64,000 nucleotides of DNA. Origin: Macrostomum lignano (taxonomy: Eukaryota). The stretch is from contig NIVC01001526.1 in NCBI GenBank assembly GCA_002269645.1, forward strand, positions 209,594 to 273,593, in the 5' to 3' direction. Both the position numbers and the translations under genes were made by a program. The notes beneath the pieces are model-generated. The model ran no database searches. It saw only the letters and a list, made by a program, of their open reading frames with translations, and had not been told where the DNA came from. The first letter of the stretch is position 1, and every line of letters starts with the position of its first letter. Positions 1 through 64,000 of this stretch are shown here, piece after piece.

Positions 1-312
1 ATAAAGGATGAGGCAGCCTACGGAATGGAGATAAAGGATGAGGCAACCTACGGAATGGAGATAAAGGATGAGGCAACCTACGGAATGGAGATAAAGGATG
101 AGGCAACCTACGGAATGGAGATAAAGGATGAGGCAACCTACGAAATGGAGATAAAGGATGAGGCAACCTACGGAATGGAGATAAAGGATGAGGCAACCTA
201 CGGAATGGAGATAAAGGATGAGGCAACCTACGGAATGGAGATAAAGGATGAGGCATCCTACGGAATTGAGATAAGGGATGAGGCAACCTACGGAATGGAG
301 ATAAAGGATGAG
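1..312 (+). repeat. 30-bp minisatellite (GGAGATAAAGGATGAGGCAACCTACGGAAT) in intron 1 of the PQ-loop gene
   Basis: About 10 near-identical tandem units are visible. They produce the MEIKDEATYG pseudo-ORF. Confidence 0.95.
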
Positions 313-10488: not shown

Positions 10489-10512
10489 ATGCAATATGTG
10501 TTACACAATGTC

Positions 10513-10953
10513 GACAATATGAGTAGCATGATGTAGACAATATGAGTAGCATGATGTAGACAATATGAGTAGCATGATGTAGACAATATGAGTAGCATGA
10601 TGTAGACAATATGAGTAGCATGATGTAGACAATATGAGTAGCATGATGTAGACAATATGAGTAGCATGATGTAGACAATATGAGTAGCATGATGTAGACA
10701 ATATGAGTAGCATGATGTAGACAATATGAGTAGCATGATGTAGACAATATGAGTAGCATGATGTAGACAATATGAGTAGCATGATGTAGACAATATGAGT
10801 AGCATGATGTAGACAATATGAGTAGCATGATGTAGACAATATGAGTAGCATGATGTAGACAATATGAGTAGCATGATGTAGACAATATGAGTAGCATGAT
10901 GTAGACAATATGAGTAGCATGATGTAGACAATATGAGTAGCATGATGTAGACA
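10513..10953 (+). repeat. 23-bp minisatellite (GACAATATGAGTAGCATGATGTA)
   Basis: About 19 identical tandem units starting just outside the right end of the palindrome. Confidence 0.95.
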
Positions 10954-11791
10954 ATATTTGTCACACAATGTCGAGAATATTCGTCACACGATGTAGACAA
11001 TATGTGTCACACGATGTAGACAATGTGTCACACGATTACTCTAACAACTGCCTAACAGCTTTTTTTCCAGCGTTACATTCTCAACTTTGGCGTATACTAT
11101 AAGTAGTATTCGAGCGACAAAATCAGTTTGTTTTCTTGCATTCCGAATCGAGACAACAATTTCGAATACATTTAGATATTCTTCCCGGCTGTACAATCAA
11201 TAGGAAGTCGCTAAGAATGCGGGAGTTCTTCCTCCTATTGCGGGTCGATATCTGCCTAAACACGTACCTACCCCTGACACTGTCAATGCAATTTCTCTCT
11301 TCCCTTGCTTTTTTTCCTGAGCTCTTTCTTTCAATTTCTGCTCTTTTCTCTCTCTCTCTTTCTCTCCCTTCTCTGTCTAGCAACAGAGCTAAGCTATTAG
11401 GAGGTGGTCAACGAGTTGACTTGTGTAACCAACTCTTGTGCACATATCGTGAGTTCGCAATATTCACTGCGTGACACCGCTAACACACACACGTTAACGC
11501 GCTATATATACTCACAGTCAGAGTTGAATATATAATTTTAAACTTGTCAATTGGACGATCGTTCATTCACAGTTGCAACTTCAGTCAGACCCCCGTCAGT
11601 GCACGGCCACTAACAGCTGCTAGGCGGGAGCTTTTCGATCCAATATTCCTATAGCTCTGTTGTTAAGGAAGAAGCTACGCAACTATAACGACTATTCCAT
11701 ACTAGCATTGTAGCTCCGGCGTTGGGGTTGGCGGTGACGGTTGCGTCTTCCTATCGTGTCTTTTCACTTCAATAATAAAATAAAAGCAGCA

Positions 11792-20400
<8,609 letters not shown>

Positions 20401-23376: not shown

Positions 23377-26300
23377 TTAGCGCACACTCTTTCGCTTACG
23401 AAGCCGTTTTAAACAGCTTTCAACAGCCGAAGCTCCCGGCACCGAGGAGCCCATTGACAGGCGCCGGCGTTTAGCAGCAACCGGTGTTGCAGAAGTGGAA
23501 GCAGCAGCAGCAGTAGCAGCAGCAGCGGCAGAGCCGGACTTTTTCAGCTTCAATTGTTGCTGCTTTTGCTTTTGCTGTTTCTGCTGCTTTTTACCAGCAG
23601 GACTTGACGGCGCGGCGGCGGCAGCAGCAGCAGCAGCAGGAGACGCCGCGGTAGATCGAGTCTGCCGCTTTGCCGACGGAGAAGTAGAATCAATTGTTGG
23701 AGTCGTTGGCAGGTAGAAGCTGACGCCAGCAGCCTGCGATGCTGGAGCCGACGCTGTCGCCGAGCCCGACAACGGGGGCGGAGCCGGGGAACGTTTGAAG
23801 CCGGGCGAGAACAGGGTCCGATCGCTGCCGGCCTGCCGTTTCACCATTGCCTGGCCAGTCAGCTTGCCGCTCGGCTCGACGGCGGCTGCCGGCGCGTGCC
23901 TGGCGTGGCCGTGAGCGTTGGCGCCGGGCCTGTTGGCGTTCTGCCATTTGTCGCACTGGACCAACAGATCGTGCAGGCGAAGCGGCTGCTGCTGCTGACT
24001 CTGCTGTCGTTCGGCATCGTCTGAGAAGCCGCCTTCAACTACAGTCGGCGACTCTCGCTGCAGTCCCAGCCTGGCTAGCGTCAAGTCGCGCTGTTCGCTG
24101 CGCAGCTGCGACATGGGCCTGCCCGGCGGGTCCAGCATCACCACCAGAGCGGTGATGTTGTCAGCCCGCAGGTCGGCTCGCATCCAGCGTTGCATCGCCA
24201 TCTGAACCAGGCTGCCGCTTGGATTGTAAAAGAAATTCTGCGGCACGTCCGGGTCGGTGAATACCTGCGGCAGGGAGGGCGGCAGACAAAGAGGTTTAAT
24301 CTCTGAATGTCTTTGTCTCTTAATTCTTAAACAGAAACTTTGTTTCTTAAAATGGTCCCCGCTTTTTTAAATGGATATTTAATTTGTTAAAACTCTGTCC
24401 GAGTTTCTTAGAACAGTAACTCGGTTTCTTAGATTAAATAATACAGACCCAGTTTCTTGGAATAGCAGCTCTGTTTCTTAGAATACAGACCCAGTTTCTT
24501 GGAATAGCAGCTCTGTTTCTTATAATACAGACCCAGTTTCTTGGAATAGCAGCTCTGTTTCTTAGAATACAGACCCAGTTTCTTGGAATAGCAGCTCCGT
24601 TTCTTAGAATACAAACCCAATTTCTTGGAATAGCAGCTCTGTTTCTTAGAATACAGACCAAGTTTCTTGGAATAGAAGCTCTGTTTCTTAACAGACCCAG
24701 TTTCTTGGAATAGCAGCTCTGTTTCTTAACAGACCCAGTTTCTTGGAATAGCAGCTCTGTTTCTTAACAGACCCAGTTTCTTGGAATAGCAGCTCTGTTT
24801 CTTAGAATACAGACCCAGTTTCTTGGAATAGAAGCTCTGTTTCTTAGAATACAGACCCAGTTTCTTGGAATAGCAGCTCTGTTTCTTAGAATACAGACCC
24901 AGTTTCTTGGAATAGCAACTCTGTTTGTTAGAATACAGACCCAATTTCTTTGAATAGCAGCTCTGTTTCTTAGAATACAGACCCAATTTCTTGGAATAGC
25001 AGCTCTGTTTCTTAGAATACAGACCCAGTTTGTTGGAATAGCAACTCTGTTTGTTAGAATACAGACCCAATTTCTTGGAATAGCAGCTCTGTTTCTTAGA
25101 ATACAGACCCAGTTTTTGGAATAGCTCTGTTTCTAAGAATACAGACCCAGTTTCTTGGAATAGCAACTCTGTTTCTTAGAATACAGACTCAGTTTCTTAG
25201 ATTAGGAGTCTCATTTGTTTAAAATGGCGTTCAGTTAGTAAAACAATCTTATAGCCACATTCAGTTTTTGTTTAAATTGGCAAACTCAATCTTATAGAAC
25301 AAAGCAAATTCCAATAACAATACCTTATTCTCTGTGGATCTCTCGCAGATGTGCACCATCTCAACGGCGCTATCGGGGGCAACCATATTCCACAATCCGT
25401 CGGAACCCAATATGAGGCACTTGTGCTTGCTATAATCCAAATTGATGCACTGCACGTCCGGCTCTGGGGAAACGTGGAATTCCGAAGAGTTTTTATCATA
25501 GGACCATAAATCGCCCAGGGAACGGGCTACGGCTAGGAATGGCACCGATTCAAATAACTGGCGCTGCTGCTGTTGCTGAGGAGACGAATCGGCGCCGCTC
25601 GACTGAGCTGGCCGGCGCCACACAACCCGATAGACGCCGCCTTTGCGCATCAGACTGCCACCGGCCCGTTCGATACGCTCTCGCTCCTTCGGGTTTGACG
25701 GCTTGTGCTCAACCGTGAGTGCTTGAGCGTGCCACAGGTCGCGGGATTGTTCGCGGGTGTCCCGACAGCCCAGCACAATGGCCGAGTCGCCAACGTGGCC
25801 AGTGTAGAGTTTACGATTGCGCACAATAGCAATGGAGGCTGTGGTGCCGGCTGTGCTGTCTAAACCGCGCGAAGTCTTGGCCCAGTTGCCTGGCGGGTTG
25901 TTGTAGGGGACAATTGTGGGTGCGTCACGTGACTCTGTGGCTATTCAACATTGATTGGTTAACTATGTTAGCCTATCTTAAGCTTGATTTTTATAGAGAT
26001 TCTAAATTGGTCAAGAAATATTCTTCCGCATTTAAGAGTTCAGCTCGGTTCATGGGGACTCTAAGCGGTGATTCTAGTGGGGATCAAGGGCGATTCTAAA
26101 GGGAGATTAAGGGCAATTCCTGGGGTGGATCAAAGCCAATTCTATTTGGGGGATTAGGGGCGATTCTTGAGGTGGATTACAGTGATTCAAATGGGAAGAT
26201 TAGAGGCGATTTCTGGTGGATTAGAGTGATTCTTGTGGTGGATTAGAGTGATTGTTGTGGTGGATTAGTGATTCAAATGGGGAGATTAGGGGCGATTCCT

Positions 26301-27449
26301 GGTGGGTTGGGAGTGATTATTGGGGTGGATTAGAGTGATTCTTCTTAAGGTGGATTAGAGTGATTCTTCTTAAGGTGGATTAGAATGATTATTGGGGTGG
26401 ATTAGGGTGATTCCAATGGGGGATTAAGAGCGATTGTAATGAAGAATTAAGGATGATTCTTGGGATCTATAAGGGCAATTTTAGTGAGTGAGTCTTAGCA
26501 ATAATTGTAATAAATTAGAGTTTTTTAGTGAATTTAGGGCTATTTCTAGGGTGGATTTGCAGCAATTCTTTCAATAGATTTGGGACCTCATAGTTAGCCT
26601 CAGCAATTTGAAGGTGATTGTTCATTAGAATTGGCAATTTTTGGGGTAGATTAGTTGCTATTTTTAGGATAAATTAGGGAAATAATTGTAATAGATTTGT
26701 AGGCAGTTAGAAGAAAGAAGAACAATAGAAAAGGAATAATACATTAATACATCATAATATACTATCCGTCAAAAGTTCCCAAACCCTTGCTACGATGTCT
26801 TCTAGCAGACATAATTTCAGTCCGTTTTAATTGTAACTTGATTCAAATGAAAGCTGCGGATCTTAGCTCCATGATGTGGTCAAGAAAAAGTTTATTCGAA
26901 GGAGTGCGTGTGAACAGGCCAGTGTTATGTACATAAAGGTTAGAGAAAAAAGTGAGGAAAAGACAAACAAGCAATTGTCTATTGATTGGAACTAACATTT
27001 TTATATCTTAAAATAAGCCTTATAAAATGCAAAAAGATTTAGCCAAAAAGATTTGGCCAATGCTAGGCCTATTGGCATTTTTTAAACAAAAATTAAAAAT
27101 TAGTATAGAGCTTACCTCGCTCATTCCACATTGCTTTGTGGGTATTAATGAAGCCTTGTCTTATAGCTTCAAGAACAGCATTGTCATCATTTGACCAAAA
27201 GCCATCAATCTTCTTTATTTCACTCAATAGATGAGACTTAGCAAATTTAGCTGCTTCAGCTCCACCATGACCATCAAAAACACCAAAGTAGGCAAATTTA
27301 ATGCGATCAGATTCAGGCTTGTCTGGGCACTTTTCAAAGTAATACGTTGCAAAATCTTCCATGTATGCACGCATACCCTGATTCATGCATTCTGTTACTC
27401 GCAGGTTGATGCCTATTTCAAAACTCTGCATTCTAGAATCAATAGGCAT
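23377..27449 (-). CDS. PPM1D: PP2C-family phosphatase Wip1/PPM1D; exons 27449-27116, 25889-25324, 24264-23377
   Basis: QGMRAYMED, YFGVFDGHGG, STAGTTAS, HVGDS, VEHKP, FLAVARSLGDLWSY, HVSPEPDV, LILGSDGLWNM, ADNIT. The WRRP and DLWSY motifs are PPM1D-specific. Junction phases 1 and 0 are consistent. An in-frame alternative acceptor ~45 nt upstream of exon 2 is possible. Confidence 0.93.
24420..25200 (+). repeat. 42-bp minisatellite (AATACAGACCCAGTTTCTTGGAATAGCAGCTCTGTTTCTTAG) in PPM1D intron 2
   Basis: Tandem units visible; they give the LGLYSKKQSCYSKK pseudo-ORFs. Confidence 0.93.
26060..26470 (-). repeat. Degenerate ~21-bp array (GGGGATTAGGGCGATTCT-like) in PPM1D intron 1
   Basis: Recurrent GGATTAG(A/G)G(C/T)GATT. 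It resembles the reverse complement of the 22736-23176 unit. Confidence 0.6.
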
Positions 27450-28046
27450 ATGGAAATGCTATCTATGTAGATAGACTAGTTTATTCGGTTTTAAGACAAT
27501 GACAGCAAAAACAAACCTGCAAGGGCTTACTGCTAGGCTTGTTCGGAAAGCAAAAAATAGGCCTAAGCCTAAGGCAGACAGAAGACAGTCAAACAGTGAA
27601 ACAGATTCTATAGACTATACAAAATGCAGATGCATTAGTAATAATAATAATAAATGTATGCTAAAAATCAATATTTTAATTAAAAATTAGACAAACACGG
27701 ACTTCAGATACGAATACAGTTAAAGCAGTGTAGTCTACTTGGTAATTATTATTATTAATTATTAATTATTACTATTTAGAAACATTTCTTGGAAAGCAAA
27801 TTTCCTCAAAAAGTAATAAAACAACTTTCTCAAAATGTTAAATTGTCCAAAAGGTAAATAACTACAAATTGAATAAAAATATTTTTAACTCTTTATTAAC
27901 AAGACAAATTCTTGAACAAGCAAATAAGTATAGATTTCAAAACTACATTTTTCTACGAAAGACTTAAATATCTCAAATTGAGTTATCGCGCCTCATCGAT
28001 TTGCTAAGTGCTGAAGTCTTTTGTGTCTAGTTAGAACCACAGGTTT

Positions 28047-29467: not shown

Positions 29468-32400
29468 ATGACATCATCATCCATGTACTACAAAAAGCTA
29501 CTGCAGGATTTAAGTAAGTAGCAGGTTTTTTCAAAACCCTATTTAATTTTAAAGTAATAGTTTTAGTTGGATCTGCAATTAGCGTTCTATCCTCATGCAA
29601 CTCAAACAGAACAGTCCCAGCTAGATCGCATCCGTTTCGCCGCCTATCGAACAGCAATGAAACTGCGCTTCATCCAACGTCGAGTCAGCCTCCACCTGGT
29701 TGACCTGTACACCTTGATCGAATGCTTCAGACTGGCCCATTTTCACGTGCTCGAATATGATGCCGAGCTGAGCCCGGAACAGCTCGAACAGTTGCTATGC
29801 ACCCTGTACGATCAGTTGAACAAGCGGCTCGGGCTGGCCAACTCAGCCGAAGTGGCTGGCGCTCACGAGAACTACCTGCAGGAACTGGCCGGCATGCTGC
29901 ACGCTTGGCTGTTTGCCAGATCGCAGTTCGGCTTCGGCCAGCGAATGACCGCACTAGGCGCTAAAGTGGCCATGTCTGTACTGTGCAACGCTAAGCCTAT
30001 TGATAAATTGCGCTATCATTTCACGCTCATATGCGACCCGGTTACTGGGGTGCTAGATCGCACTAAAGCCCAGGCTTACACCATCGAACTGCTATCCTTA
30101 CCTGCCGGAGTATTCGAACAGAATAATTTCTATTACCAGCCGGACACCTGCTGCTTTCTGTCTCAGTGCGCCGGTCTGTTGCATTTCTTGGAAATTCTTC
30201 TAGCCGAAGACGCCGCTCCACAGCCGCTGCTCTGGCTGACGACATTTCATCGGCTGCAGACTACCGCCAGCCATCCAGTGAGGTGCTCGGTGTGCGGCCA
30301 GGAGCCGATATTGGGCTTTCGGTACAAATGCCAACAGTGCATCGGTTCGTTTAACCTGTGCCAGGAGTGCTTCTGGACCGGGGCGACTGCTGGCGGGCAC
30401 ACGCTCAACCACGAGGTTAAGGAGTACACCAGCTGGGTGAGTGGCGCTTGGCCAGCAGGTTGCTCGAAGTTTACATAAAGTGGGTTATGCCCAGCGCTAA
30501 GGGAATTCTGCTCATTCCGCTGACACCTGAGCGCACATACATGCGCGCCAGTACACATACATGCGCGCCAATACTGTACTTAGGCGCGCACTCAAATACA
30601 CACGCTCACACAGGGTGTACAGCGGGCCCTTTGACTTTCTAGTCGTCAGGCATGTCTGTACTCTCTCGATGCCTGTGTTTCAATTTAGAAACTCCATTGC
30701 GTCGATTATTGTAATCCCCTAATCGTAGTCTCAGAAAACAATTAAATTTATTAATTAACCTCCATCTAAGATCTTAGAGGCTGCAGAAAAGCAGAAATTT
30801 CAATTACAATTGCAGCAACATCCCAGTATCGATCAAAATGGCCCCCATATCGATTGAAGCAACCCCCAGTATCGATCGCAGCAACCCCCACCCATATCGG
30901 TCGTAGCAACCCCCATATCGATCGCAACAACCCCCATATCGATCGCAGCACCCCTATATCGATCGCAGCAACCCCCACCCATATCGATCGCAGCAAACCC
31001 AATATCGATCGCAGCAACCCCGACCCATATCGATTGCAGCAGCCCCCACCCATATCGATCGCAGCAACCCCCACCCATATCGATCGCAGCAACCCCATAT
31101 CGACCGCAGCAACCCCCACCCATATCGATCGCAGCAACCCCCACCCATATCGATCGCAGCAGCCCCATTATCGATTTTAGCAACCCCCACCCATATCGAT
31201 CGCAGCAACCCCCACCCATATCGATCGCAGCAACCCCAATATGGATTGTAGCAACCCCCACCCATATCGATCGCAGCAACCCCAATATCGATTGTAGCAA
31301 CCCTCACCCATATCGATCGCAGCAACCCCATATCGATCGCAGCAACCCCCACCCATATCGGTCGTAGCAACCCCCACCCATATCGATCGCAGCAACCCCC
31401 ATATCGATCGCAGCAACCCCCATATCGATCGCAGCAACCCCCATATCGATCGCAGCAACCCCCACCCATATCGATCGCAGCAACCCCCACCCATATCGAT
31501 CGCAGCAACCCCCATATCGATCGCAGCAACCCCCACCCATATCGATCGCAGCAACCCCCAAATCGATCGCAGCAACCCCACCCATATCGATCGCAGCAAC
31601 CCCAAAATCGATCGCAGCAACCCCCACCCATATCGATCGCAGCAACCCCCACCCGTATCGATCGCAGCAACCCTCATATCGATCGCAGAAATTCTAATCT
31701 CGCTATGAATAAAGTATCAGTTCTTCATAGAACATTTCTCTATTTTATATGCCTTCCAGTGATCAATAAGTCCTTTGAGCTACCGTATTGGTATAAATCC
31801 TATAGCAGCAGTTCATATAACGCTTGGAAACATGCCATGAACTTTGTTTGCATTGGCAGAGCTTGGGGATGAAGCGAGTACGTGTCGGAGACGAGATTGA
31901 GGATCAGTCAGCCACGTGATTGCTTTTTTTGTGGAGCTTTAAGTGGACATTCAATCGCTAAATTTGCGGTGTGTATAAAGTGCAGCAACTCTTGAAAAAA
32001 TGAGAATGAATGAACCGCGTCCTCGCTCAACAGGGCGGTTGGTTTAATACTATGTAGTTGGGCACTTGTAAAGTCCTAGAATAGAATGAATAAGCTGTAA
32101 ACCTTTTAAGCCTATGCTCCACTTTTATCCGCATGGGACTCGGTATAAATATTTATACACAGCAAACATTGCTGTTCCGCTTGCTAGGCCTGTTGCTCTG
32201 TGCTTTTCCATCCATCTCGTTCATCGGTTTTGCTTCATAGCTACTGTTTCTATGCTTTTATATTGCAGGCATTTTCTTCTTTTAGTTTGGCTAACTATTC
32301 ATTGTTTGCGAATCAGTTGTTTTTGGAATAATTTTAACATCCGTTTACTGAAATGTTATCAGAGACTCTTCGAATTGGATCTGTGCATTTGAATAGCCTG

Positions 32401-36671: not shown

Positions 36672-39600
36672 ACGACGGCCGCGGCGCTGTTGGATCCACA
36701 GGACAGCGGCCCGATGCTTGACCTGACTCACATTGTACCGCCTCCGCCTCCGCCCGCGTCAATGAACCAGAGTCTGACTGCCACTGGTGAGGCTGATGGA
36801 GAGGGATCTGGGAGATTTGGGATGACTATAAGGGGATTCGGGAGATTTCGGATGACTATAAGGGGATTCGGGAGATTTCGGATGACTATAAGGGGATCTG
36901 GGAGATTTGGGATGACTATAAGGGGATCTGGGAGATTTGGGATGACTATAAGGGGATCTGGGAGATTTGGGATGACTATAAGGGGATTCGGGAGATTTCG
37001 GATGACTATAAGGGGATTCGGGAGATTTCGGATGACTAGAAGGGGATCTGGGAGATTTGGGATGGCTAGGAGGGGATCTGGGAGATTTCGGATGGCTATA
37101 AGGGGATCTGGGAGATTTGGGATGACTAGAAGGGGATTCGGGAGATTTGGGATGACTAGGAGGGGATTCGGGAGATTCGGGATGACTAGGAGGGGATTCG
37201 GGAGATTTGGATGGCTAGGAGGGGATCTGGGAGATTTAGGATGACTAGAAGGGAATGTGGGAGATTTGGGATGACTAGAAGGGAATCTGGGAGATTTGGG
37301 ATGACGAAGGGAATCTGGGAGATTTGGATGGCTAGGAGGGGATCTGGGAGATTTGGGATGACTAGAAGGGAATCTGGGAGATTTGGGATGACTAGAAGGG
37401 AATCTGGGAGATTTGGGATGACTAGAAGGGAATCTGGGAGATTTGGGATGACTAGAAGGGAATCTGGGAGATTTGGGATGACTAGAAGGGAATCTGGGAG
37501 ATTTGGGATGACTATGAAGGGATCTGGGAGATTTGGATGGCTAGGAGGGGATCTGGGAGATTCGGGATAACTATGAGTTATGAGGTACTCTATCCATCCC
37601 GCAGCTAAAATGCACTATTTACTGTCAATCGCCCTGTCCCAAAGGGCTAATGAAGCGGTGCACAGTCTCAAAAAAGTGATTTGTTAGCCCCATGGCTGCG
37701 GTTGTGGCAGTGTCGCTCAGAGTTGCAGTAAATTGAATTTCTCCGAATTCCTCTCTCACCCCCTGTCTCTCCTTGATTTCATTACGAATGCTTGACTTTG
37801 CTGGGCGTTTGCTTTTATAGTTTTGGGTGAAAATTGAGAACTATCCATATGCATTATATATATATATATGCATGCATAGTCTAAGACTGTGCTCTAATGC
37901 AATCCAAGTACTGTCAATAATAAAGTGCAGATATAGACTGATGCACCCTCTCCTATTTTCCTTAGTTACATCAGATTTTCTAAGTTTAAAACTAGTCCTC
38001 TGACACCCTACCTGGAATCGAACCCGGGTCCTCTGACACCCTACCTGGAATCGAACCCGGGCCCTCTGACACCCTACCTGGAATCGAACCCGGGCCCTCT
38101 GACACCATACCTGGAATCAAACCCGGGCCCTCTGACACCCTACATGGAATCAAACCCGGGCCCTCTGACACCCTACCCGGAATCAAACCTGGGTCCTCTT
38201 ACGCCATATCTGGTATCGAGCCCGGGTCCTTCGAAATTAACGAGGAATCGAACCCGGGGCCTCCCCCCCACAACCACCCGCAGGAGGCAGCCTGGGCAGA
38301 CCCGGCAAGCTCACCCAGCTGTCGCACAGTCTGCAGCATGTTGACGGTGGGACTTCAGCAATGCCATCAATTGCTGCTACAGCTGCTTCTGTTAGTATTG
38401 CGCCTTTTTCTGCGGCTTCAATAGCTCAGCCAATGATGTCGGATGGGCTGGCTATGCAAGCAGTGCAGCATCAGCAGCACCAGCAGCAGCAAGGGATTAA
38501 CGCGTGGGCTCCAGCAAGTCTCGCTACTGGTGCACTGACTGTGACTACGAATGCCTTTGTGTCTGGGCAGCAGCAACAACAACAGCAGCAACAGCGATTG
38601 GATGACGAACATCGGTTAATTGCCAGGTAGGGGGTCAAAAATTACTCTCTTCTTGACCGTGTTTCTTGAAGACCAACCTGAGTCTCTTTTTGAAGGTTTA
38701 ATATCGACAAAAAGTAATGTTTTTTTTAAATAGAGCAAGTCGTTTCTTTTTTTATAAAAATTTCGTTGTTTCAAAAACAGCTACAATATTATTAGAAAGT
38801 TTTGTACTAAAAATGTTCTTAAAAATGGAGTTAATTTTAAGAACTAAGCTTTATTCTTAGAAAACAGATGTCATTCCTAGAAATAGACGTCGTTTCTAAA
38901 AACAGACGTAATTCTTAGAAAATAGACATCATTCTTAGAAGCAGACGTGATTCTTAGAAACAGGTGATTCTTAGAAAATAGACGTCACTCATAGAAACAG
39001 ACGTCATTCTTAGAAACAGGCGTCATTCTTAGAAACAGGCGTCATTCTTAGAAACAGGCGTCGTTCTTAGAAACAGGCGTCATTCTTAGAAACAGGCGTC
39101 ATTCTTAGAAACAAGCGTCATTCTTAGAAACAGGCGTCATTCTTAGAAACAGACATGATTCTTAGAAAAAAGACGTCACTCATAGAAACAGACGTCATTC
39201 TTAGAAACATACGTAATTCTTGGACTAGACGTAATTCTTATAAACAGACGTGATTCTTAGAAACAGACGTGATTCTTAGAAACAGACGTAATTATTATAA
39301 ACAGACGTGATTCTTAGAAACAGACGTGATTCTTAGAAACAGACGTGATTCTTAGAAACAGACGTGATTCTTAGAAACAGACGTGATTCTTAGAAACAGA
39401 CGCCATTCTTAGAAATAGACGCCATTCTTAGAAATAGACGCCATTCTTAGAAAACAGACGTTCTTTTCTGATGAAGCCCCCTCGGCGCCAACCCTCAAGG
39501 TACGCGGCCGCTCTACAATTAAATGGCGCAGCCGGCGCCAATTCCGGCGCTTTTCCAGTCGGCGCCATTGGCGGCGATGGCGGCGCGGCCGCTTTAGCCG

Positions 39601-46400: not shown

Positions 46401-47644
46401 TCACAGTTTCAGCAGCAACTCACCCCCCCCCCCGACCAGGCAACGTCAAGGAGGACGACTGTCGCCGCTTTCCTCCGCACGGCTACCCGGGAGCTGCCGG
46501 GTTCGGCGGCCTCAGCGTCAACAGCCGCCTGGCGCCAAAGGTGCAGCCGCGCAACGCCGCCGGAATCCCGCTGGGCTCCGCCAGCCGAGGCGATTTGTAC
46601 AGATCGCAGGCGCTGCAACGTGCCAAAACTGGAACCAAGTACTGGTTCGAAGATAGGCAGCCCGCACCGCGTGAGCTGAGGGGGGAGCTGTGGTTAAGGG
46701 GTCAGATCAGGCCCATGCATTCATAACCAACTGCTTCCGGGTAGCTTAGTCAGTGTGTCTAACAGGAATTTTCTCATGTCTCTAGCAGGTAGCTTCTCAT
46801 GTCTCTAGCAGGTAGCTTCTCATGTCTCTAACAGGTAGCTTCTCATGTCTCTAACAGGTAGCTTCTCATGTCTCTAACAGGTAGCTTCTCATGTCTCTAA
46901 CAGGTAGCTTCTCATGTCTCTAACAGGTAGCTGCTCATGTCTCGAACAGGTAGCTGCTCATGTCTCGAACAGGTAGCTGCTCATGTCTCGAACAGGTAGC
47001 TGCTCATGTCTCGAACAGGTAGCTGCTCATGTCTCGAACAGGTAGCTGCTCATGTCTCGAACAGGTAGCTGCTCATGTCTCGAACAGGTAGCTGCTCATG
47101 TCTCGAACAGGTAGCTGCTCATGTCTCGAACAGGTAGCTGCTCATGTCTCGAACAGGTAGCTGCTCATGTCTCGAACAGGTAGCTGCTCATGTCTCGAAC
47201 AGGTAGCTGCTCATGTCTCGAACAGGTAGCTGCTCATGTCTCTAACAGGTAGCTACTCATGTCTCTAACAGGTAGCTACTCATGTCTCTAACAGGTAGCT
47301 TCTCATGTCTCTAACTGGTGGCTTTCTCATGTCCCTAACAGGTAGCTTTTTATATCTCTAACAGGAAGCTTCTCATGTCCCTAACAGGTAGCTTCTCACC
47401 TTCACTATGTAGCTTGTCATGTCTAACTGTTCTTTTCATACAGTCCTATTCAAACAGGCTTCTAGAGTCGCGTTCTATTCAAGTAATTAGCAAAGTTTCT
47501 ACTGATAGTAATGGAAGAAGGGCATGGTTATAATAGAAATTTATTATCACAAGAATCCGTAATTTATAACGATAATTTCTTCGCATTCCAGTCGTGCCCA
47601 ACACAATCCAAGGCAGAATAATGAAGTCTGGTTCGGCCTACTGA
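43448..47644 (+). CDS. Uncharacterised ~300-aa protein; exons 43448-43536, 44895-45003, 45311-45704, 46413-46670, 47592-47644
   Basis: Five GC-rich segments joined by GT-AG junctions with consistent phases (2,0,1,1) give a 903-nt open frame MSSGIQRPKTAGP...SRGDLYRSQALQRAKTGTKYWFEDRQPAPLVPNTIQGRIMKSGSAY*. No recognised domain. Confidence 0.7.
43570..44390 (+). repeat. 24-bp minisatellite (AACTGTCTTAGAAATGTAAGCGTC)
   Basis: Tandem units in intron 1 of the orphan gene. Confidence 0.93.
44625..44822 (-). mobile_element. Truncated copy of the tRNA-derived SINE
   Basis: Shares GCCGTTAATTGCACGAGCAGAGCCAAGCCGAGATTCCAATT...GACTGCACTTGGAATCGAGC with 28280-28370. Confidence 0.8.
45757..46336 (+). repeat. 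~20-bp minisatellite (TCTGACACTGACATCTGACC)
   Basis: Direct observation. Confidence 0.92.
46772..47395 (+). repeat. 23-bp minisatellite (CTCATGTCTC(G/T)AACAGGTAGCT(G/T))
   Basis: Direct observation. Confidence 0.95.
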
Positions 47645-50654: not shown

Positions 50655-51270
50655 TACCCCCATTGATTTCAGGTCCTTCCTTTGAAGTGCCTACAACCCC
50701 CCATTGATTTCAGGTCCTTCCTTTTATGCGCCGACAGCCCCCTCATTGATTTCAGATCCTTCCTTTTATGCGCCGACAGCCCCCTCATTGATTTCAGGTC
50801 CTTCCTTTTATGCGCCGACAGCCCCCTCATTGATTTCAGGTCCTTCCTTTTATGCGCCGACAGCCCCCTCATTGATTTCAGGTCCTTCCTTTGAAGTGCC
50901 GACAATCCTATAGATTTAAGGTCCTTCCTTTAATGGGCCGACAACCCCCATTGATTTCAAGTCCTTCCATGTGCTGACAACCCCCCATTGATTTCAAGTC
51001 CTTCCTTTAATGTGCCGACACCCTCCCATAGATTTAAGGTCCTTCCTTTGAAGGGCCGACAACCCCCATTGATTTCAAGTCCTTCCTTTAATGTGCCGAC
51101 AACCCCCATTAATTTCAAGTCCTTCCTTTAATGTGCCGAAAAACCCCCATTGATTTCAGGTCCTTCCTTTGATGTGCCGACAACCTCCCATTGATTTCAG
51201 GTCCTTCCTTTGATGTGCCGACACCCTCCCATTGATTTCAAGTCCTTTGATGTGCCGACAACCCCAATTG
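50655..51270 (+). repeat. ~42-bp minisatellite (CCCCTCATTGATTTCAGGTCCTTCCTTTTATGCGCCGACAG)
   Basis: Direct observation. Confidence 0.92.
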
Positions 51271-54200
51271 ATTTTCAATTCTTCTTTTAAAGGACTCCAT
51301 GTTTTTCTTGCATTTTGCATCCTTTCAGACACCCACCGAATTCATGTAAACGAAGCGTAAAATTTCAAGTGTACTGTAGCTAAAAATCTGAGAAAAATTT
51401 CGATAACAAAACGCTAAACAAAGCCACGAGCTTCACAGCACTCAGCTGAGAAACAAAAAGTTTCTTACATAGTTGGTAACTGTTCCACTAATGTTTAAAG
51501 CATATCTGGGCAAAAATTTTTACTTTTAAGCTGGTTCTGCAAGCGGCTTAGGCCAAACTCAACTGCAAGAAATTGATGCAAGAAAAATAACTAGAAGCAA
51601 CAAGAAGGGGCCGGACCGGCCTGTCCATTGCACTTGTGGCAGCTGGTCCCCTCTGTAATCCCCCCCGGATAATGGCAATTGATTTGATCGCTTAAACCGC
51701 TTCTGTTTCTTTCCCAGACTCTGTCAATCAATACGGATTGGAATTTGAAAATAAGCAGACAGATGCAAGTAATATGCTTCATCGCTCCAGAAGAGACAAA
51801 AAAGCATATGCAAAAGTTCTAAATCAAATCCGCCTTGTCAAACTTACCAATAAGAAAATGGTCCACAGGATTATATTGGGTAAAGATCGAGAATTCAGTA
51901 ACGATTGCTCAGATTTTGTCTTGTACTGTCAAGAGTCGGCGTCTCTAAAGCGAGATTTTCTAGCATGCTTTTTATAGAGAGACTAGCTGATAGATATAAT
52001 TGTCAGCAAGGCGTGGCCCTGACCAATGGGGATTGAGATCTGGGACTGGGATCGAAGGCGGCTCGTATTTTCTATTACTAAATTAGGCAAAGAGACTGTC
52101 GCAGGTTTTGCACAGGATTCACAGAAAATATTCTGACTATAGTATCCTATTAATCCAGATTTTTTAAATTTAGGAAAACTTATAAACGCTCATATTTTAA
52201 AAAAAGACTTGATCTTTTAAAAAATTAGGTAGGATTTATCAAAACATATTTTAGAGTTTTCCACTAGGGATTTCTGAGAGAAAATCCACGATTCTTCTTA
52301 GAAAATCGTTTCTAAGAAACGACTCGGGTTTTCTGAGGAAAAACGTTAAACTTAGAACATAAGTTTTTCTAAGAATTTTAATTGGCTTTCTAAGAGACCG
52401 TCGATTTTTAATGACGTTATTATGATTTCTAAGAATAATAGTGGATTTATTACAAAAGTTCCACAGTTCTTTAAAACGCATTATATGCCTGCTAAGAGAT
52501 ACGACGTCGGTCTTGTGATAAAGTATCCGCATGATTTCTAAGAAATATCGGTAGGTTTTCTATGAAATAATATCCCGTTAAAAAATAATCGCTAACTTTT
52601 CACGAATAATCCCGAGGTTTCGATGCAGTATCTTGGGCCTTCTTACAAAAAAGCATCATCGGGTTTCAATGAAGTATCTAAGGATTTCTAAGAAATATGC
52701 TGGGTTTTCTAAGAAGCATCGTAGACAGTTGAAGAGATATCACCCGGTTTTGATAAGGTTTCACTGGATTTCTCCATGGGGTTTTCTAAGAAGCACCGCA
52801 GGTTTCCAATTTACAAGATAACACTGTGGTGTTGTATATTGTAACGGTAACTTCCAGTGGTCCTTAGTTCGAAGTTTGATTATGTATACTTAGGCTACCT
52901 CCTTTTTCCTTAATGAATCTTTATCAGCGGTTATTCAGACTACGGTTTCTCAGCGCCCACTGCTCAACAAGTTAATTAGCATATACTACTGTTCTCCCGA
53001 AAATGCAAATAAGCCCAACCAATCTGCACTCAGTCTGAATGAAGCTCAGCTGCAGCCTCGTCCTACTCAAAACAATTCTCGAGTGACAAGATGCCACTCA
53101 GTCAGATTAAAATTCGAATTCGATCTTGTAGTTGTCGGCATCAATTCGAAGAAAATTTCTGAAGACAGTCTGAAATTCTGTTTGACAGAATGTTAATTAT
53201 AGGCAGAACTTCGAGTCTTACCTGGGCTCAAACAGTCTGTAATTATATGACCGCTACATGCAGAAGGCAGAAGGAAGGCTGTCTGCAAAATCGTTGCAGC
53301 AAATTTTGCGACAATAGCCGGGGCCATTGCTATTCAGGAAGAAACAACAAGCGAGCAGCAGTTCCTAGGAAAATTGCTAAATTATAGTCATGCAGAACGC
53401 ATCTTCGCAAAGTTGAGGCGCCCGCAATGCACCTGCTCAGATGCCACGTCTCATTATAGTTTACGCTTCAAGTTGAAGCAGTCAGCATACCTGCCTAGAG
53501 CTGAGATCCCACAACTCACTGCTCAAAGTTTAAAATTTATTAAATCGATAAAATTTGGATCAGATAGAGTTTAGATTTACAGGTTCGAAAGCTATTTTTG
53601 ACAACAAAGCAGTGCGCCAATGCAGTGCCAAAACATCCGGCCATATTTAGACGTGAGGACATGACATGAGCCAGACAGCTCAGAGACTGAGTTTGCGTGC
53701 GTGCTGAGATCAAACAATTGAGCAATCAAGTTATCAGCTCGTGCTGCCTTTTACATTCCTTACTTGAACTGAGCATTCGGCTCTTTGATGCAAAGGTTTG
53801 ATGCAAAGCAAATCAGATATCGTCACACAGCACCATGCAGTGCCTTGGAGGGGTTTGGCTTTCATAGCTGTGAAGTCCGGATTGTTGCTGCAAAATGTTG
53901 ACAGAAATTGCTGTTTTGATTTAACAATAACTAGAACACATCTCACCGTGAACTGAACTTGCAAATAGGTTGACAAAACACACAGTTCTTCAGTTTACAA
54001 TTCAGAAGTTTAATAAGGTGAAGCTATAGGCAGTTCGGCTTCGTAATGCTAAAAAAGGAACTGAAAATTTCCGAAATCTCGATAACTAATTTTACAACGT
54101 CCTTAGCTTCTGGCTTATTTTAGTTGGCCCACGGGCAGCATCCCGTCTGTCACTGAGCCCGTTTAGCCAGAGCCCATGGAACAAGCCGCTGTGCTCATGT

Positions 54201-54373
54201 TAACAATGTCTGATTTATTATTAACTAATGCGTAACCGACTCCCGATCGCGGTGCAGCGGCCATAATAACAGTTTTGGAGGTCGTAAAACACGGCAGAAA
54301 TTTCTTCACCAACCGTGCATTATGCATGGCTGAGGTGAAGCGAACCTCTCGCTGACTGTGCGCCTGCAGTTCG

Positions 54374-58532
<4,159 letters not shown>

Positions 58533-58769
58533 CTAAAATTATTCTAATACTAGAATTCTCAGTGTTTGCTTGCGGAAAAAATGCTTTATAAGAACAACAA
58601 CCGACTTACCATAGACTATAATACTCCTGGATAATAAAAATCAGAAATTCTTTCAGAAGTTTAAACAAAACAGTATAGTACGAAACTTAGAAAGAGACCA
58701 GATCCAGCTACTCAAAAAGATGGCATCAAAAAGTCTCAAAGTCTCAAACTGTCGACAATGGTACCAGAG

Positions 58770-60340
58770 GCAATTGACAGTGACACCGTGTAGATCAGAC
58801 ACAATCGACAGTGACATTGTGTAGATCATGCACAATCGACAGTGACACTATGTAGATCAGACACAATCGACAGTGACACCGTGTAGATCAGACACAATCG
58901 ACAGTGACATTGTGTAGATCATGCACAATCGACAGTGACACTATGTAGATCAGACACAATCGACAGTGACACCGTGTAGATCAGACACAATCGACAGTGA
59001 CATTGTGTAGATCATGCACAATCGACAGTGACACTATGTAGATCAGACACAATCGACAGTGACACTGTGTAGATCAGACACAATCAGCAGTGACACTGTG
59101 TAGATCAGACACAATTGACAGTGACACTGTGTAGATCAGACACAATTGACAGTGACACCGTGTAGATCAGGCACAATCGACAGTGACACTGTGTAGATCA
59201 GGCACAATCGACAGTGACACCGTGTAGATCAGGCACAATCGACAGTGACACTGTGTATGTAGATCAGACACAATCGACAGTGACACCTTGTAGATTAGAC
59301 ACACTGTGTAGATCAGACACAATCGACAGTGACACCTTGTAGATTAGACACACTGTGTAGATCAGACACAATCGACAGTGACACCGTGTAGATCAGGCAC
59401 AATCGACAGTGACACTGTGTAGATCAGGCACAATCGACAGTGACACTGTGTAGATCAGACACAATCGACAGTGATACTGTGTAGATCAGACACAATCGAT
59501 AGTGACACTGTGTAGATCAGACACAATTGACAGTGACACTGTGTAGATCAGACACAATCGACAGTGATACTGTGTAGATCAGACACAATCGACAGTGATA
59601 CTGTGTAGATCAGACACAATCGATAGTGACACTGTGTAGATCAGACACAATCGACAGTGACACTATGTAGATCAGACACAATCGGCAGTGACACTGTGTA
59701 GATCAGGCACAATCGACAGTGACAGTGTAGATCAGACACAATCGACAGTGACAGTGTAGATCAGACACAATCGACAGTGACACCGTGTAGATCAGACACA
59801 ATCGACAGTGACACCGTGTGGATCAGACATAATCGACAGTGACACTGTGTAGATCAGACACAATTGACAGTGACACTGTGTAGATCAGACACAATCGACA
59901 GTGACACTGTGTATGTCGATCAGACACAATCGACAGTGACACCTTGTAGATTAGACACACTGTGTAGATCAGACACAATCGACAGTGACACCTTGTAGAT
60001 TAGACACACTGTGTAGATCAGACACAATCGACAGTGACACCTTGTAGATTAGACACACTGTGTAGATCAGACACAATCGACAGTGACACTGTGTAGATCA
60101 GACACAATCGGCAGTGACACTGTGTAGATCAGGCACAATCGACAGTGACAGTGTAGATCAGACACAATCGACAGTGACACTATGTAGATCAGACACAATC
60201 GACAGTGACACTGTGTAGATCAGACACAATCGGCAGTGACACTGTGTAGATCAGACACAATCGACAGTGACACTGTGTAGATCAGACACAATCGGCAGTG
60301 ACACTGTGTAGATCAGACACAATTGACAGTGACACCGTGT
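58770..60340 (+). repeat. 31-bp minisatellite (GACAGTGACACTGTGTAGATCAGACACAATC)
   Basis: About 50 tandem units. Confidence 0.96.
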
Positions 60341-60700
60341 AGATAGATGCAGATAGAACCATTAGGACATGTTGGTCTCATCAAAAAAATCTGAAAATTT
60401 TGTGAAAAAAGATTCGACAGAGTCTTATAGAATGAATCAAGGCAGGTTAATAAGAACTCGGAGAAGATGAGCCGATTTTAACGGTTCTGAGAAAGTAAGG
60501 GAAGTACGTTGTAAGTACGCTTGTAAGCAAACTAGTTCGAGTCTTTTGAAGGCTTGAATTAATGAAACATTTCTTGAGCACCTGCGAACTCCCAAGTGAA
60601 GAAAATTGAGCATGCCTGAGGCCATCTCGAGTGGAACTCTATGAGCAATTTTGAGACGCACAATCAAACTAGCCGTTCCTAAGAGCAGCCAGCTAGTTAC

Positions 60701-60920
<220 letters not shown>

Positions 60921-61804
60921 AGAAGACTTATTAATAAAGGATTTGCTATCTTTGAAAAGCGGTGGTTTTTTAAATTCCCTAGTCTGAGATGGATTAGAAG
61001 CATCAGGCTTTGGATTTTTAGAGAAGGAGAATTCCCTACTACCTAAGGACAGAAAAATCTCCTCACAGCCCACTCTCATCCCGTGTTCAAAGCTTTCATT
61101 AACTCCAGAACCAATCACGATCGGTTGGCATCAAATCCAGTTCAGTCGTTTCATTCTCTCAAATTTTGTTATTGAAAGCTTATAACAGCTCGAGACGCAG
61201 GTCCTCCAGCGGCACGAAGCGGGTTTTTAGTCCAGAACTTCTCTTGAACTGGAGCTTGTCTCAACGTACTAACAGGTAAGTTTTGCTGATATATATTGAA
61301 TGTTATAGAAAGATCAACAGAGCATATTAATACATGCTCTCAGACAGGCTGCATCATGAAATTCGCTCAGTTTTTCATAGCTGCAAAAAATTCGCGCTTT
61401 AGGCGGCAAATAAATCAAATTATTTGATATTATCCAAGCCAGCAGCTTGAGTTCCCTTGAGGCTTGATGGAGCATGGATTAGCATAATGGATTCAGTTTA
61501 GTGCTTGCTAGATCGAACTGGTCGTAGTGACGCGGTCTCAAATTCGATAGATTAGAAAAACAAGAGCAAACATAAAAATGATTTTTCCTATTAATCGGTG
61601 ACGCACCGCGAGCCATACGGCATATGGCACATTGGCATATTTTACCGACTCTCTCATTAAATATGCACCCCACAGGATTAAGTTGTAAAATATAAGCTGC
61701 GAGTAAGTAAATCTAGCCACCATTTCCTTCTTAACAACAGCAACATCCACACGAAGGATTAACTACCGCGTGCACCTTGAGATATCGTTGACGCTAATTC
61801 AAGC

Positions 61805-62395
61805 ATGGTGCGTTATGGAACGGCTTTTGCTATGGCAGTCATTGCCGTTGTCTGCTTCTTGACGGTCGAGGCTCACGAAAGCAAGCGACGCTACAACTAC
61901 CTGAGGGACGCCATGCTGAGCAAGCGAGGCTACAACTACCTGAGGGACGCCATGCTGAGCAAGAGAGGCTACAACTACCTGAGGGACGCCATGCTGAGCA
62001 AGAGAGGCTACAACTACCTGACGGACGCCATGCTGAGCAAGCGAGGCTACAACTACCTGAGGGATGCCATGCTGAGCAAGCGAGGCTACAACTACCTGAC
62101 GGACGCCATGCTGAGCAAGCGAGGCTACAACTACCTGAGGGATGCCATGCTGAGCAAGAGAGGCTACAACTACCTGAGGGACGCCATGCTGAGCAAGCGA
62201 GGCTACAACTACCTGAGGGACGCCATGCTGAGCAAGCGAGGCTACAACTACCTGAGGGACGCCATGCTGAGCAAGCGAGGTTACAACTACCTGAGGGACG
62301 CCATGCTGAGCAAGCGAGGTTACAACTACCTGAGGGACGCCATGCTGAGCAAGCGAGGCTACGAATACCTGCATAAAGCAATGAGAGAAATCTAA
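61805..62395 (+). CDS. Multicopy neuropeptide precursor: signal peptide, then 12 x (G/R)YNYL(R/T)DAMLS and 1 x GYEYLHKAMREI, separated by KR
   Basis: Hydrophobic signal AFAMAVIAVVCFLTVEA. Every 13-aa unit ends in dibasic KR. Several differences between units are synonymous (CGA/AGA, GAC/GAT, GGC/GGT). A diverged terminal unit precedes the stop. Confidence 0.9.
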   Translation: MVRYGTAFAMAVIAVVCFLTVEAHESKRRYNYLRDAMLSKRGYNYLRDAMLSKRGYNYLRDAMLSKRGYNYLTDAMLSKRGYNYLRDAMLSKRGYNYLTDAMLSKRGYNYLRDAMLSKRGYNYLRDAMLSKRGYNYLRDAMLSKRGYNYLRDAMLSKRGYNYLRDAMLSKRGYNYLRDAMLSKRGYEYLHKAMREI

Positions 62396-63176
62396 ATCTG
62401 GCCAAAGTTCAATAAGTTTGGCTTGGCTTTGGCTTGATACCAATATATTGGCGTATCAATAAAGTTGATGAAACCTATACGATATAAACTAAGATTTATC
62501 AAGAAACAGTTCTTGTATTTTTCGATTTAAAATTACACAATATGCAGCCACTATTTGCTCTGAATTTATAATTTTAATCTGATCAGAGGAATAACTAATG
62601 AGTTCGCGAGATCCCCTACGGCTGTCTCTGATATATATAATAAAATATTTATTAAAGCCTATAGGCCAAGCCTTGCAATCCTTTGATTTTCACTCTGCTT
62701 TCTGTTTCTTATTAAGTTTTTCGGTAAGAAAGACGGATTCTGCAGTGCAGGGTAGCAGAGTTATTATCGATTGATTGATCCACCATAAAATAACTGGCTT
62801 AGTGGGATGAAATTTGCAATGATTTTTGACGTAAATAAAGCTCATATTATAAGAACTGATTCTACTGTTCAAATTTTGGCTTGTACTTTTTTAATGCAGA
62901 TTTGTGTATAGTTAAGACTAAGCTATTTCGAAAAGATAGTATAGAGATGATTCACTTTTATGATATTTATCACATCTAGCCGAAAAATCTCTTATATTTA
63001 GCAGGGAAGATCTCACAACCTATGGAAGATATTATCAAGCAAGGAAACTTCATATTTTCAGAAGCATTTTACATCTAATACGTTTATCAACAAATTCCTA
63101 TATCCAACAGAGATCATAGCACAGAAGATCTGGATCTGGATACGGTGACCGCAAGAACAACAGGATACACTACATG

Positions 63177-63943
63177 GGGCCCATCACAAGCTCGAAAAAT
63201 CACATCGTCGAAAAGCATCCACCATCACAAGCTCGAAAAGTCATAAGCTCGAAAAATCATATTGTCGAAAAGTTTAGCAACCACCATCACAAGCTCGAAA
63301 AATCATAAGCTCGAAAAATCACATCGTCGAAAAGTTTAGCAACCACCATCACAAGCTCGAAAAGTCATAAGCTCGAAAAATCATATCGTCGAAAAGTCCA
63401 GCAACCACCATCATTAGCTCGAAAATTCACAAGCTCGAAAAGTCACATCGTCGAAAAGGTTAGCAACCACCATCACAAGCTTGAATAGGGTTAGGGTTAG
63501 AGCTTGTGCCTTAGGGTTAGGGCTTAGGTTAGGGTCGGGGTTAGAACTAGTGCCTTTAAGTTAGGGTTTAGGGTTAGGTTAGGGTTATGGTTCAGGGTTA
63601 GGCTAGGGTACTGGTGCCTTAGGGTTAGGGTTAGTGCCTTGGGGTTAGGGTTAGAGCTTGTGCCTTTTCAAGCTTGTGATGGTGTTTGCTAAACTTTTCG
63701 ACGATGTGATTTTTCGAGCTTATGACTTTTCGAGCTTGTGATGGTGGCTGCTAAATCAGTTTTCGACGATGTGATTTTTCGAGCTTATGACTTTTCGAGC
63801 TTGTGATGGTGGTTGCTAAACTTCTCGACGTTATGATTTTCGAGCTTATGACTTTTTCGAGATTGTGATGGTGGTTGCTAAATCAGTTTTCGACGATAAT
63901 GATTTTTCGAGCTTGTGATTTTTCGAGCTTATGATGGCGACCC
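63177..63943. mobile_element. Mutator-like foldback MITE: tandem-repeat TIRs (CCATCACAAGCTCGAAAA...) around a degenerate TTAGGG core; 9-bp TSD CACTACATG
   Basis: The left array 63177-63483 is the inverse of the right array 63668-63943. Termini are GGG...CCC. CACTACATG lies at 63168-63176 and 63944-63952. (GGGTTA)-rich core at 63487-63655. Confidence 0.78.
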
Positions 63944-64000
63944 CACTACATGTGTATTATATATATATGCATGCAAGCTTTCGGACTGCTCCAAGTGTAT

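Follow-up and report, generated by a model that had tools for sequence, protein, structure and literature searches.

Does a tandem array of 39-bp units, lying in a minisatellite-rich stretch of the genome of the flatworm Macrostomum lignano, encode a precursor of secreted peptides, or is it one more minisatellite that can be translated? The stretch, referred to below as the window, is the whole 64,000 nucleotides that were analyzed (positions 209,594 to 273,593 of the forward strand), and it forms the end of contig NIVC01001526.1 of the Mlig_3_7 assembly (GCA_002269645.1), with which it agrees at 100% over 51805–64000. The array belongs to an open reading frame (ORF) at 61805–62395 (+), here called the YNYL gene after a motif in its units. 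On balance we favor the view that the locus is a real M. lignano gene without introns that codes for a secreted multicopy propeptide, whose likeliest role is that of a signaling peptide (neuropeptide or hormone). With regard to its parts, we are confident that the locus truly encodes a secreted peptide that undergoes processing, while the proposal that the product is neuronal or endocrine is close to an even call. As a transparent flatworm amenable to transgenesis, M. lignano serves as a model in work on regeneration, stem cells and sexual conflict, and an orphan peptide that is encoded in many copies, is not amidated and has a mass that can be predicted exactly would be an easy target in it for peptidomics, in situ work, RNA interference (RNAi) and receptor studies.

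Organization of the precursor

The complete coding sequence (61805–62395) is a single exon of 196 codons plus a stop; it begins with an ATG at 61805, and in-frame stop codons are present close by upstream. Splitting the translation at Lys-Arg (KR) yields MVRYGTAFAMAVIAVVCFLTVEAHESKR, one RYNYLRDAMLSKR, nine GYNYLRDAMLSKR, two GYNYLTDAMLSKR and a terminal GYEYLHKAMREI followed by TAA. This reproduces exactly the signal peptide, the unit counts and the release by KR that a first-pass annotation of the DNA had reported. The N-terminal 23 residues (MVRYGTAFAMAVIAVVCFLTVEA; 61805–61873) are predicted to be a signal peptide on the basis of hydrophobicity and of the (-3,-1) rule, applied by eye: a positively charged n-region, MVR, is followed by a core of about 16 residues (about 6–21) and by V at -3 and A at -1 before His24, and the Kyte–Doolittle means over seven residues reach 2.7–3.5 across residues 7–21. 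Behind it come a HES linker and the first KR (61874–61888), which reads KR-R with the next residue, and then 12 in-frame units of 39 bp, each coding for an 11-mer plus KR (61889–62356; delimited by Tandem Repeats Finder, which gives 61880–62371, period 39, 12.6 copies, 96% matches and 0% indels, and by translation). RYNYLRDAMLS is unit 1, GYNYLTDAMLS occupies units 4 and 6, and the remaining nine are GYNYLRDAMLS, a peptide with a computed net charge of 0 and an isoelectric point (pI) of 5.8. The diverged terminal unit (62357–62395) departs from the consensus unit at 18 of 39 nucleotides, yet it keeps G-Y-x-Y-L-x-x-A-M, with a synonymous change of GCC to GCA, and then stops.

There are 13 KR sites in the precursor, one behind the HES linker and one behind each of the 12 units. 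None of the units carries an amidation Gly before its KR and none is set apart by a spacer peptide, as the earlier reading had stated, and since no Gly stands ahead of any KR, no amidated product is expected.

The deposited gene models

On two contigs of GCA_002269645.1 the annotation calls a gene for exactly this 196-residue product, and in the 10 kb upstream of it no gene is called despite the presence of far longer minisatellite ORFs. The M. lignano annotation was made solely from transcript models derived from RNA-seq (PMC5730564), and from this procedure we infer that the YNYL gene is transcribed. Another deposited protein, PAA57452.1 (A0A267E9S5; P0012 in our searches), entered as the “hypothetical protein” BOX15_Mlig028694g1, is a 53-residue model of another genomic copy of the gene, the third one described below. 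This model fuses the first unit to the terminal unit over a gap of 234 nucleotides, that is, exactly six units, and it opens within unit 1, where the absence of any GT dinucleotide leaves no GT donor. A gap of exactly six units without a donor indicates that a repeat-collapsed transcript was aligned to the genome and that the entry is mis-modeled; the artifact in turn implies that a transcript existed. The entry also illustrates how peptide genes that bear repeats become collapsed or truncated in annotations derived from short reads.

The first-pass annotation had proposed that the peptide family is new. The gene is already in GenBank and UniProt as an uncharacterized protein, so its novelty is limited; on the other hand, its motif is not found in the planarian prohormone catalog, since the 4-mers YNYL, AMLS, DAML and YEYL have no occurrence in the Collins 2010 supplements. 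Nor do the supplementary files of Collins 2010, Brand 2020 or Wudarski 2017 contain the peptide strings or the gene ID. Neither the ID Mlig028694 nor the strings occur in any searchable full text, a search that does not cover every flatworm catalog, and no expression table with an entry for Mlig028694 turned up. No prohormone catalog of M. lignano was found in the searchable literature, apart from one study of a PC2 knock-down.

Genomic copies and unit number

The Mlig_3_7 assembly holds three copies of the YNYL gene, all with an intact frame. The expectation that the number of units may vary was borne out: the window and NIVC01000463.1 have 12 units plus the terminal one, as against seven plus one in the more diverged copy on NIVC01002487.1. 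The copy on NIVC01000463.1 (L001) is one synonymous base away from the ORF in the window. We rejected the identity of the two proteins as a sign of selection, because the flanks within 1 kb are also 99.5–100% identical. The third copy (L005, on NIVC01002487.1) has a genomic ORF of 131 residues (L005 3001–3396), in which RYNYPRDAMLS is followed by six GYNYLRDAMLS and by an identical terminal unit (39 of 39 nucleotides). Its signal peptide and HESKR linker match 61805–61888 of the window at 84 of 84 nucleotides, and its flanks are 2–4% diverged from those in the window.

The units at the edges of the array agree between copies, with CGC in the first and GGT in the last unit or units ahead of the terminal one; these matching edges indicate that the change in unit number took place inside the array. 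Moreover, several variants recur in neighboring units or with one unit in between (ACG in units 4 and 6, GAT in 5 and 7, GGT in 11 and 12), which points to growth of the array via tandem duplication of blocks of one and two units. The difference in unit number between copies means that the dynamics of a tandem array can alter peptide dose.

Both contigs with the 13-unit gene stop 1.6–2.3 kb 3′ of it. In the window, two arrays of a 62-bp minisatellite lie there in inverted orientation (63183–63937; arms of 81–105 nucleotides, 89–95% complementary), with a degenerate telomere-like TTAGGG/TAGGGT tract between them (63486–63654), and it is apparently at this structure that the assembly breaks off. 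On L005 the next annotated gene follows 2 kb downstream (L005 5387–6396) and codes for a cytosolic phospholipase A2-like protein with C2 and PLA2_B domains; the window and L001 stop short of the equivalent position.

Coding gene or translated minisatellite

Tandem repeats make up 15% of the M. lignano assembly (PMC5730564), and the array resembles the non-coding minisatellites of this genome in that it is homogeneous, varies in unit number between copies and has undergone internal block duplications. We therefore compared it with its neighbors in the window. The first-pass annotation had contrasted the array with the surrounding minisatellites, and that contrast was overstated: the arrays at 1–316, 10508–11024 and 46754–47398 also have 96% matches and no indels, and several arrays have a period divisible by 3. 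The YNYL array itself is open in four of six frames. An open frame, the lack of indels and a unit identity of 96% were consequently rejected as evidence of coding. Nor are regular dibasic sites sufficient. Three other minisatellite ORFs, at 1–256 (-), 37211–37570 (+) and 50669–50872 (-), also translate into repeat peptides with regular dibasic pairs, in their case without a signal peptide, and serve as negative controls: in the M. lignano genome, chance is enough to produce bare dibasic periodicity.

What does single out the YNYL ORF is its signal peptide and its base composition at third codon positions (GC3). A filter for dibasic density (at least four dibasic pairs and more than 0.04 per residue) was passed by seven of the 133 ORFs in the window that start with ATG and code for at least 50 residues. 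Among those seven, to which the comparison of hydrophobicity was confined, only the YNYL ORF has a strongly hydrophobic N-terminus, with a 10-residue Kyte–Doolittle maximum of 3.17 against 0.89 or less in the other six. The GC content at the three codon positions of its frame is 0.46, 0.38 and 0.83, whereas the other open frames of the array peak at position 1 or 2; real exons in the window, those of the PP2C and dystrobrevin-like genes described below, are also skewed in GC3 (0.63–0.65).

The variation between units was said by the first-pass annotation to be largely synonymous, and so it is by count. Five columns vary among the 12 units, three of them synonymously (GGC/GGT, GAC/GAT and CGA/AGA) and two non-synonymously (Arg for Gly in unit 1, and Arg/Thr), a proportion that is weak alone (p = 0.08). 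Over the three genomic copies, four types of variant are synonymous and two non-synonymous, and the probability of at least four in six is 0.025–0.063, given that 22–29% of random changes would be synonymous; the range reflects transition bias. A second comparison concerns the non-repeat part of the coding sequence, where the window and the third copy show no difference in 123 bases as opposed to 20 in the nearest 660 flanking bases (3.0%); about 3.7 substitutions would be expected in those 123 bases, and the probability of none is 0.024. A non-coding minisatellite would vary without regard to codons and would confer no extra conservation on the unique sequence beside it; neither expectation agrees with what was found, on tests that are marginal.

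Could the locus nevertheless be non-functional, that is, a minisatellite that chanced to lie behind an ATG and a run of hydrophobic codons, with noise-level transcription and a gene call due to its ORF alone? The window is packed with minisatellites, many of them homogeneous, free of indels and open in several frames, the three control arrays also give dibasic repeat peptides, the searches described below recovered no homologues, and near-identical units speak of a recent expansion. Against this, a signal peptide, a KR in every unit, a terminal unit of the form GYxYLxxAM followed by a stop, and the GC3 skew all fall in exactly the same frame, and this cap and stop-bearing unit, together with the codon-position structure and the synonymous bias, are also what distinguish the array from the non-coding minisatellites of M. 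lignano. In addition, synonymous variants are in excess, the non-repeat coding part has no substitution as compared with 3% in the flanks, none of the three copies has lost the frame, not even the one that is five units shorter, and the annotation calls this gene while skipping the far longer minisatellite ORFs nearby. We thus regard a non-functional ORF as improbable. The contrast with the neighbors exists because of the signal peptide, the KR in each unit, GC3, the annotation call and the constraint tests, and not because of openness.

Search for relatives and comparison with known precursors

An exhaustive HMMER search of 1.84 billion representative proteins returned 97 matches, of which P0012, itself a copy of the YNYL gene, alone is a true relative; the remaining matches are unrelated repeat proteins with a period of 13 residues, or analogous KR-delimited precursors with other peptides. 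A search with the collapsed form, P0012, returned itself only. The word-indexed search with the full precursor had a single match, P0001 (E = 2e-3), from two unidentified Logan runs, which we rejected as due to chance, as its repeats read RGYNF and it lacks both a signal peptide and KR. That search missed P0012 although it is in the database, and is unreliable for a repetitive query. Matches to Pfam families (YqbF, zf-NOSIP, DUF559 and others) were likewise discarded as spurious, because they add up weak matches to the repeats and no single stretch passes. The gene is apparently lineage-restricted, judging from these searches, and a restriction to M. lignano itself is provisional, because an orthologue assembled from short reads would collapse to one or two units and would be undetectable if its signal peptide had diverged. 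Should the gene prove both functional and specific to the lineage, it would strengthen the case that multicopy peptide signals arise often and locally.

Among the matches with other peptides are several unannotated metagenome or Logan precursors that resemble genuine multicopy neuropeptide precursors (P0046, P0084, P0096, P0025, P0045, P0058 and P0099). Their peptides include the pedal-peptide/orcokinin-like GLDHIGSSLLD, PFDPLGSGFIS and MLDPIGDSLL, as well as the W(x)6W-amide-like GWQDMQGNWG, and SYVVDPILG.

The closest parallel in organization is offered by the planarian precursors Smed-PPP-1 and Smed-PPP-2, which give rise to non-amidated peptides of 11–12 residues, for example SYFDKIGSDLL and RYFDKIGSEML, that have been confirmed by mass spectrometry and are lowered by pc2 RNAi (PMC2953531). 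As in the YNYL precursor, these flatworm proteins have a signal peptide followed almost directly by peptides separated by KR or KRR, without spacers and without an amidation Gly; the peptides start with G, S or R and an aromatic residue and have a hydrophobic end, and the last unit is diverged. It could be, then, that the YNYL gene is a diverged member of the pedal-peptide/orcokinin family, related to ppp-1 and ppp-2, in which [FY]-D-x-I-G...LL has drifted to Y-N-Y-L-R-D-A-M-L. The shared plan, a signal peptide and then spacer-free, KR-delimited, non-amidated 11–12-mers, would be consistent with this, as would one register that aligns aromatic-D/N-x-I/L ... M/L-L, and P0046, P0084 and P0096 are among the weak HMMER matches (E = 1.6e-7 to 7.6e-4, values inflated by periodicity). 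However, those matches are driven by the 13-residue period and by KR, and unrelated 13-residue repeat proteins score far higher. When GYNYLRDAMLS was compared, ungapped and with BLOSUM62, with 22 peptides from Smed-PPP-1/2 and from the three precursors found by HMMER, the best score was 16, a value that 14% of shuffles reach (p = 0.14), whereas the reference sets score 16–41 mutually, with nine of ten comparisons at 21 or above.

The peptide has the general traits of the family, being a tandem, non-amidated, dibasic-separated peptide within its range of about 11–15 residues, but it lacks the signature [FYL]-D-x-[IVL]-G followed by a hydrophobic C-terminus: Asn replaces the conserved Asp, the Gly-rich center is missing, and the FDxIG...LL of the planarian peptides is absent. 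The YNYL copies are also more numerous than those of Smed-PPP-1/2 and almost identical even in DNA, and the YNYL peptides are predicted from genome and annotation. We rejected membership on account of this chance-level similarity; common descent with the family is, in our opinion, very improbable, and the precursor may be described as built like the pedal-peptide type. A search with Smed-PPP-1 for pedal-peptide genes of M. lignano returned two Logan proteins and no Macrostomum entry, and it also missed the query's own record, so that it carries no information on this point.

In a more general sense the YNYL gene belongs to the species- or clade-restricted multicopy peptide precursors, a recognized and common class. 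In xenacoelomorphs, where 16 were reported from single species, such precursors, too, lack orthologues outside a species or small clade and are in some cases non-amidated; unlike the YNYL precursor, which comes from a genome and its deposited annotation, they were found in transcriptomes and so have support from transcripts (PMC6188537). The YNYL gene represents no new kind of system, and its product is a reasonable candidate for a new neuropeptide or secreted signal of the ordinary sort.

An analogy of mechanism exists outside the animals. Fungal precursors of the alpha-factor type have a signal peptide and tandem copies of an extracellular signal that are freed at KR by a kexin-type protease (Kex2); their copy number differs between alleles and species, and their spacer dipeptides are trimmed by a dipeptidyl aminopeptidase. 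The likeness is one of mechanism only, as the YNYL gene is from another kingdom and bears no sequence relation to them.

Proposed processing and role of the peptides

The view of the locus as a convertase-processed multicopy precursor is supported by the sequence, by the transcriptome-derived annotation and by a PC2 of the host. A signal peptide (by heuristic), dibasic sites around every copy and paracopies with a conserved core, as expected of a prohormone, are all present, and a suitable processing enzyme is known in the organism from the literature, M. lignano having a PC2 homologue, RNA815_2403.2, that is expressed in the nervous system and whose RNAi is lethal (PMC4490696). Because the prohormone pathway is established and a neuronally expressed PC2 exists in M. 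lignano, we propose the following course of events. The signal peptide would be removed in the endoplasmic reticulum following VEA (Ala23); a subtilisin-like proprotein convertase (PC2 or furin type) would then cut behind each KR in the secretory pathway, and a carboxypeptidase of the E/D type would take off both basic residues. With no C-terminal Gly there would be no amidation, and the products would end in a free Ser. Each precursor of the window allele would thereby give nine GYNYLRDAMLS ([M+H]+ 1302.61), two GYNYLTDAMLS ([M+H]+ 1247.56), one RYNYLRDAMLS (1401.69), or YNYLRDAMLS (1245.59) if the cut falls behind KRR, and one GYEYLHKAMREI ([M+H]+ 1509.75); the third copy would add a product of [M+H]+ 1385.66. 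The peptides would be released from regulated secretory cells as signals, at a dose per transcript set by the number of units, which would shift by unequal exchange or slippage.

An alternative is that the peptide is an exocrine product. A gland (cement, adhesive, pharyngeal or epidermal, or one that supplies prostate or seminal fluid) would synthesize the precursor, a furin-type enzyme would cleave it, and the peptide would be released from the body as a pheromone, a partner-manipulating ejaculate peptide or a defensive peptide. The architecture of the precursor suits a gland product equally well, and its orphan status and the turnover of the array between copies are typical traits of rapidly evolving genes with a reproductive or secreted product. 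In Macrostomum, genes involved in reproduction evolve rapidly (PMC7336406), and planarian prohormones are expressed in glands and in the copulatory apparatus as well (PMC2953531). Conversely, the supplementary files of an RNA-seq paper on Macrostomum reproduction do not contain the gene ID, although studies differ in their ID schemes, and the net charge and pI of the main peptide speak against a cationic antimicrobial role. We consider an exocrine role to be somewhat unlikely.

The signaling reading, which we prefer, also has to face several points that count against it. The site of signal-peptide cleavage comes from a rule of thumb. Transcription was deduced from the way in which the annotation was made. 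At the DNA level the units hardly differ, so that the array is either young or homogenized, and the searches of representative proteins found no homologue showing long-term constraint. The synonymous excess and the lack of substitutions agree in direction, but they are based on few events and are marginally significant, and gene conversion between the copies could have contributed to the latter. Finally, the precursor, as predicted, would fit a neuronal and a glandular source equally.

A more novel reading can also be put forward. The gene may be a very young, possibly de novo-born signaling-peptide gene, in which a minisatellite expanded behind a signal-peptide-like start. We think this doubtful, and we are just as hesitant about its corollary, namely that a convertase site chanced to be encoded in every unit, with the result that any slippage would alter the dose of peptide. 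If the de novo reading were true, the 12 + 1 and 7 + 1 arrays in a neopolyploid would be a live example of how a multicopy precursor originates and is tuned.

Other features of the window

Two motifs flank the YNYL ORF and add to what singles it out. A possible TATA box, TATAAG, lies at 61691–61696 (+), 109–114 nucleotides 5′ of the ATG of the YNYL gene, and is recognized by motif only; the hexamer is the same in the diverged third copy, where the closest substitutions are at -107 and -69. An AATAAA polyadenylation signal, also by motif only, lies at 62458–62463 (+), 63 nucleotides past the stop codon, and is kept in the third copy though substitutions surround it at +52 to +57 and +69.

Farther from the YNYL gene, exons of a PP2C-family phosphatase are found at 25264–25944 and 27096–27458 (-), the gene spanning 25.2–27.5 kb, and dystrobrevin/dystrophin-like exons with EF-hand_2, EF-hand_3 and ZZ domains at 29567–30475 (+), that is, 29.6–30.5 kb. 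The introns and the intergenic DNA around both genes are full of minisatellites, which also dominate the rest of the window. At 16463–16882 (+) there is a weak match to a tyrosine recombinase (Phage_integrase; E = 7e-4, under the Pfam cut-off), and the adjoining ORF at 17232–17990 (-) has a stretch that is RNase H-like by eye, with no Pfam match; the pair is probably a decayed mobile element, with remnants of a Crypton or a retroelement. No intact RNA gene was detected in the window by ARAGORN or Rfam. A 33-bp minisatellite at 37997–38263 has a unit that holds GGAATCGAACCCGGG, the complement of the consensus of the tRNA T-arm, which suggests that this array may be derived from a tRNA or from a short interspersed nuclear element.

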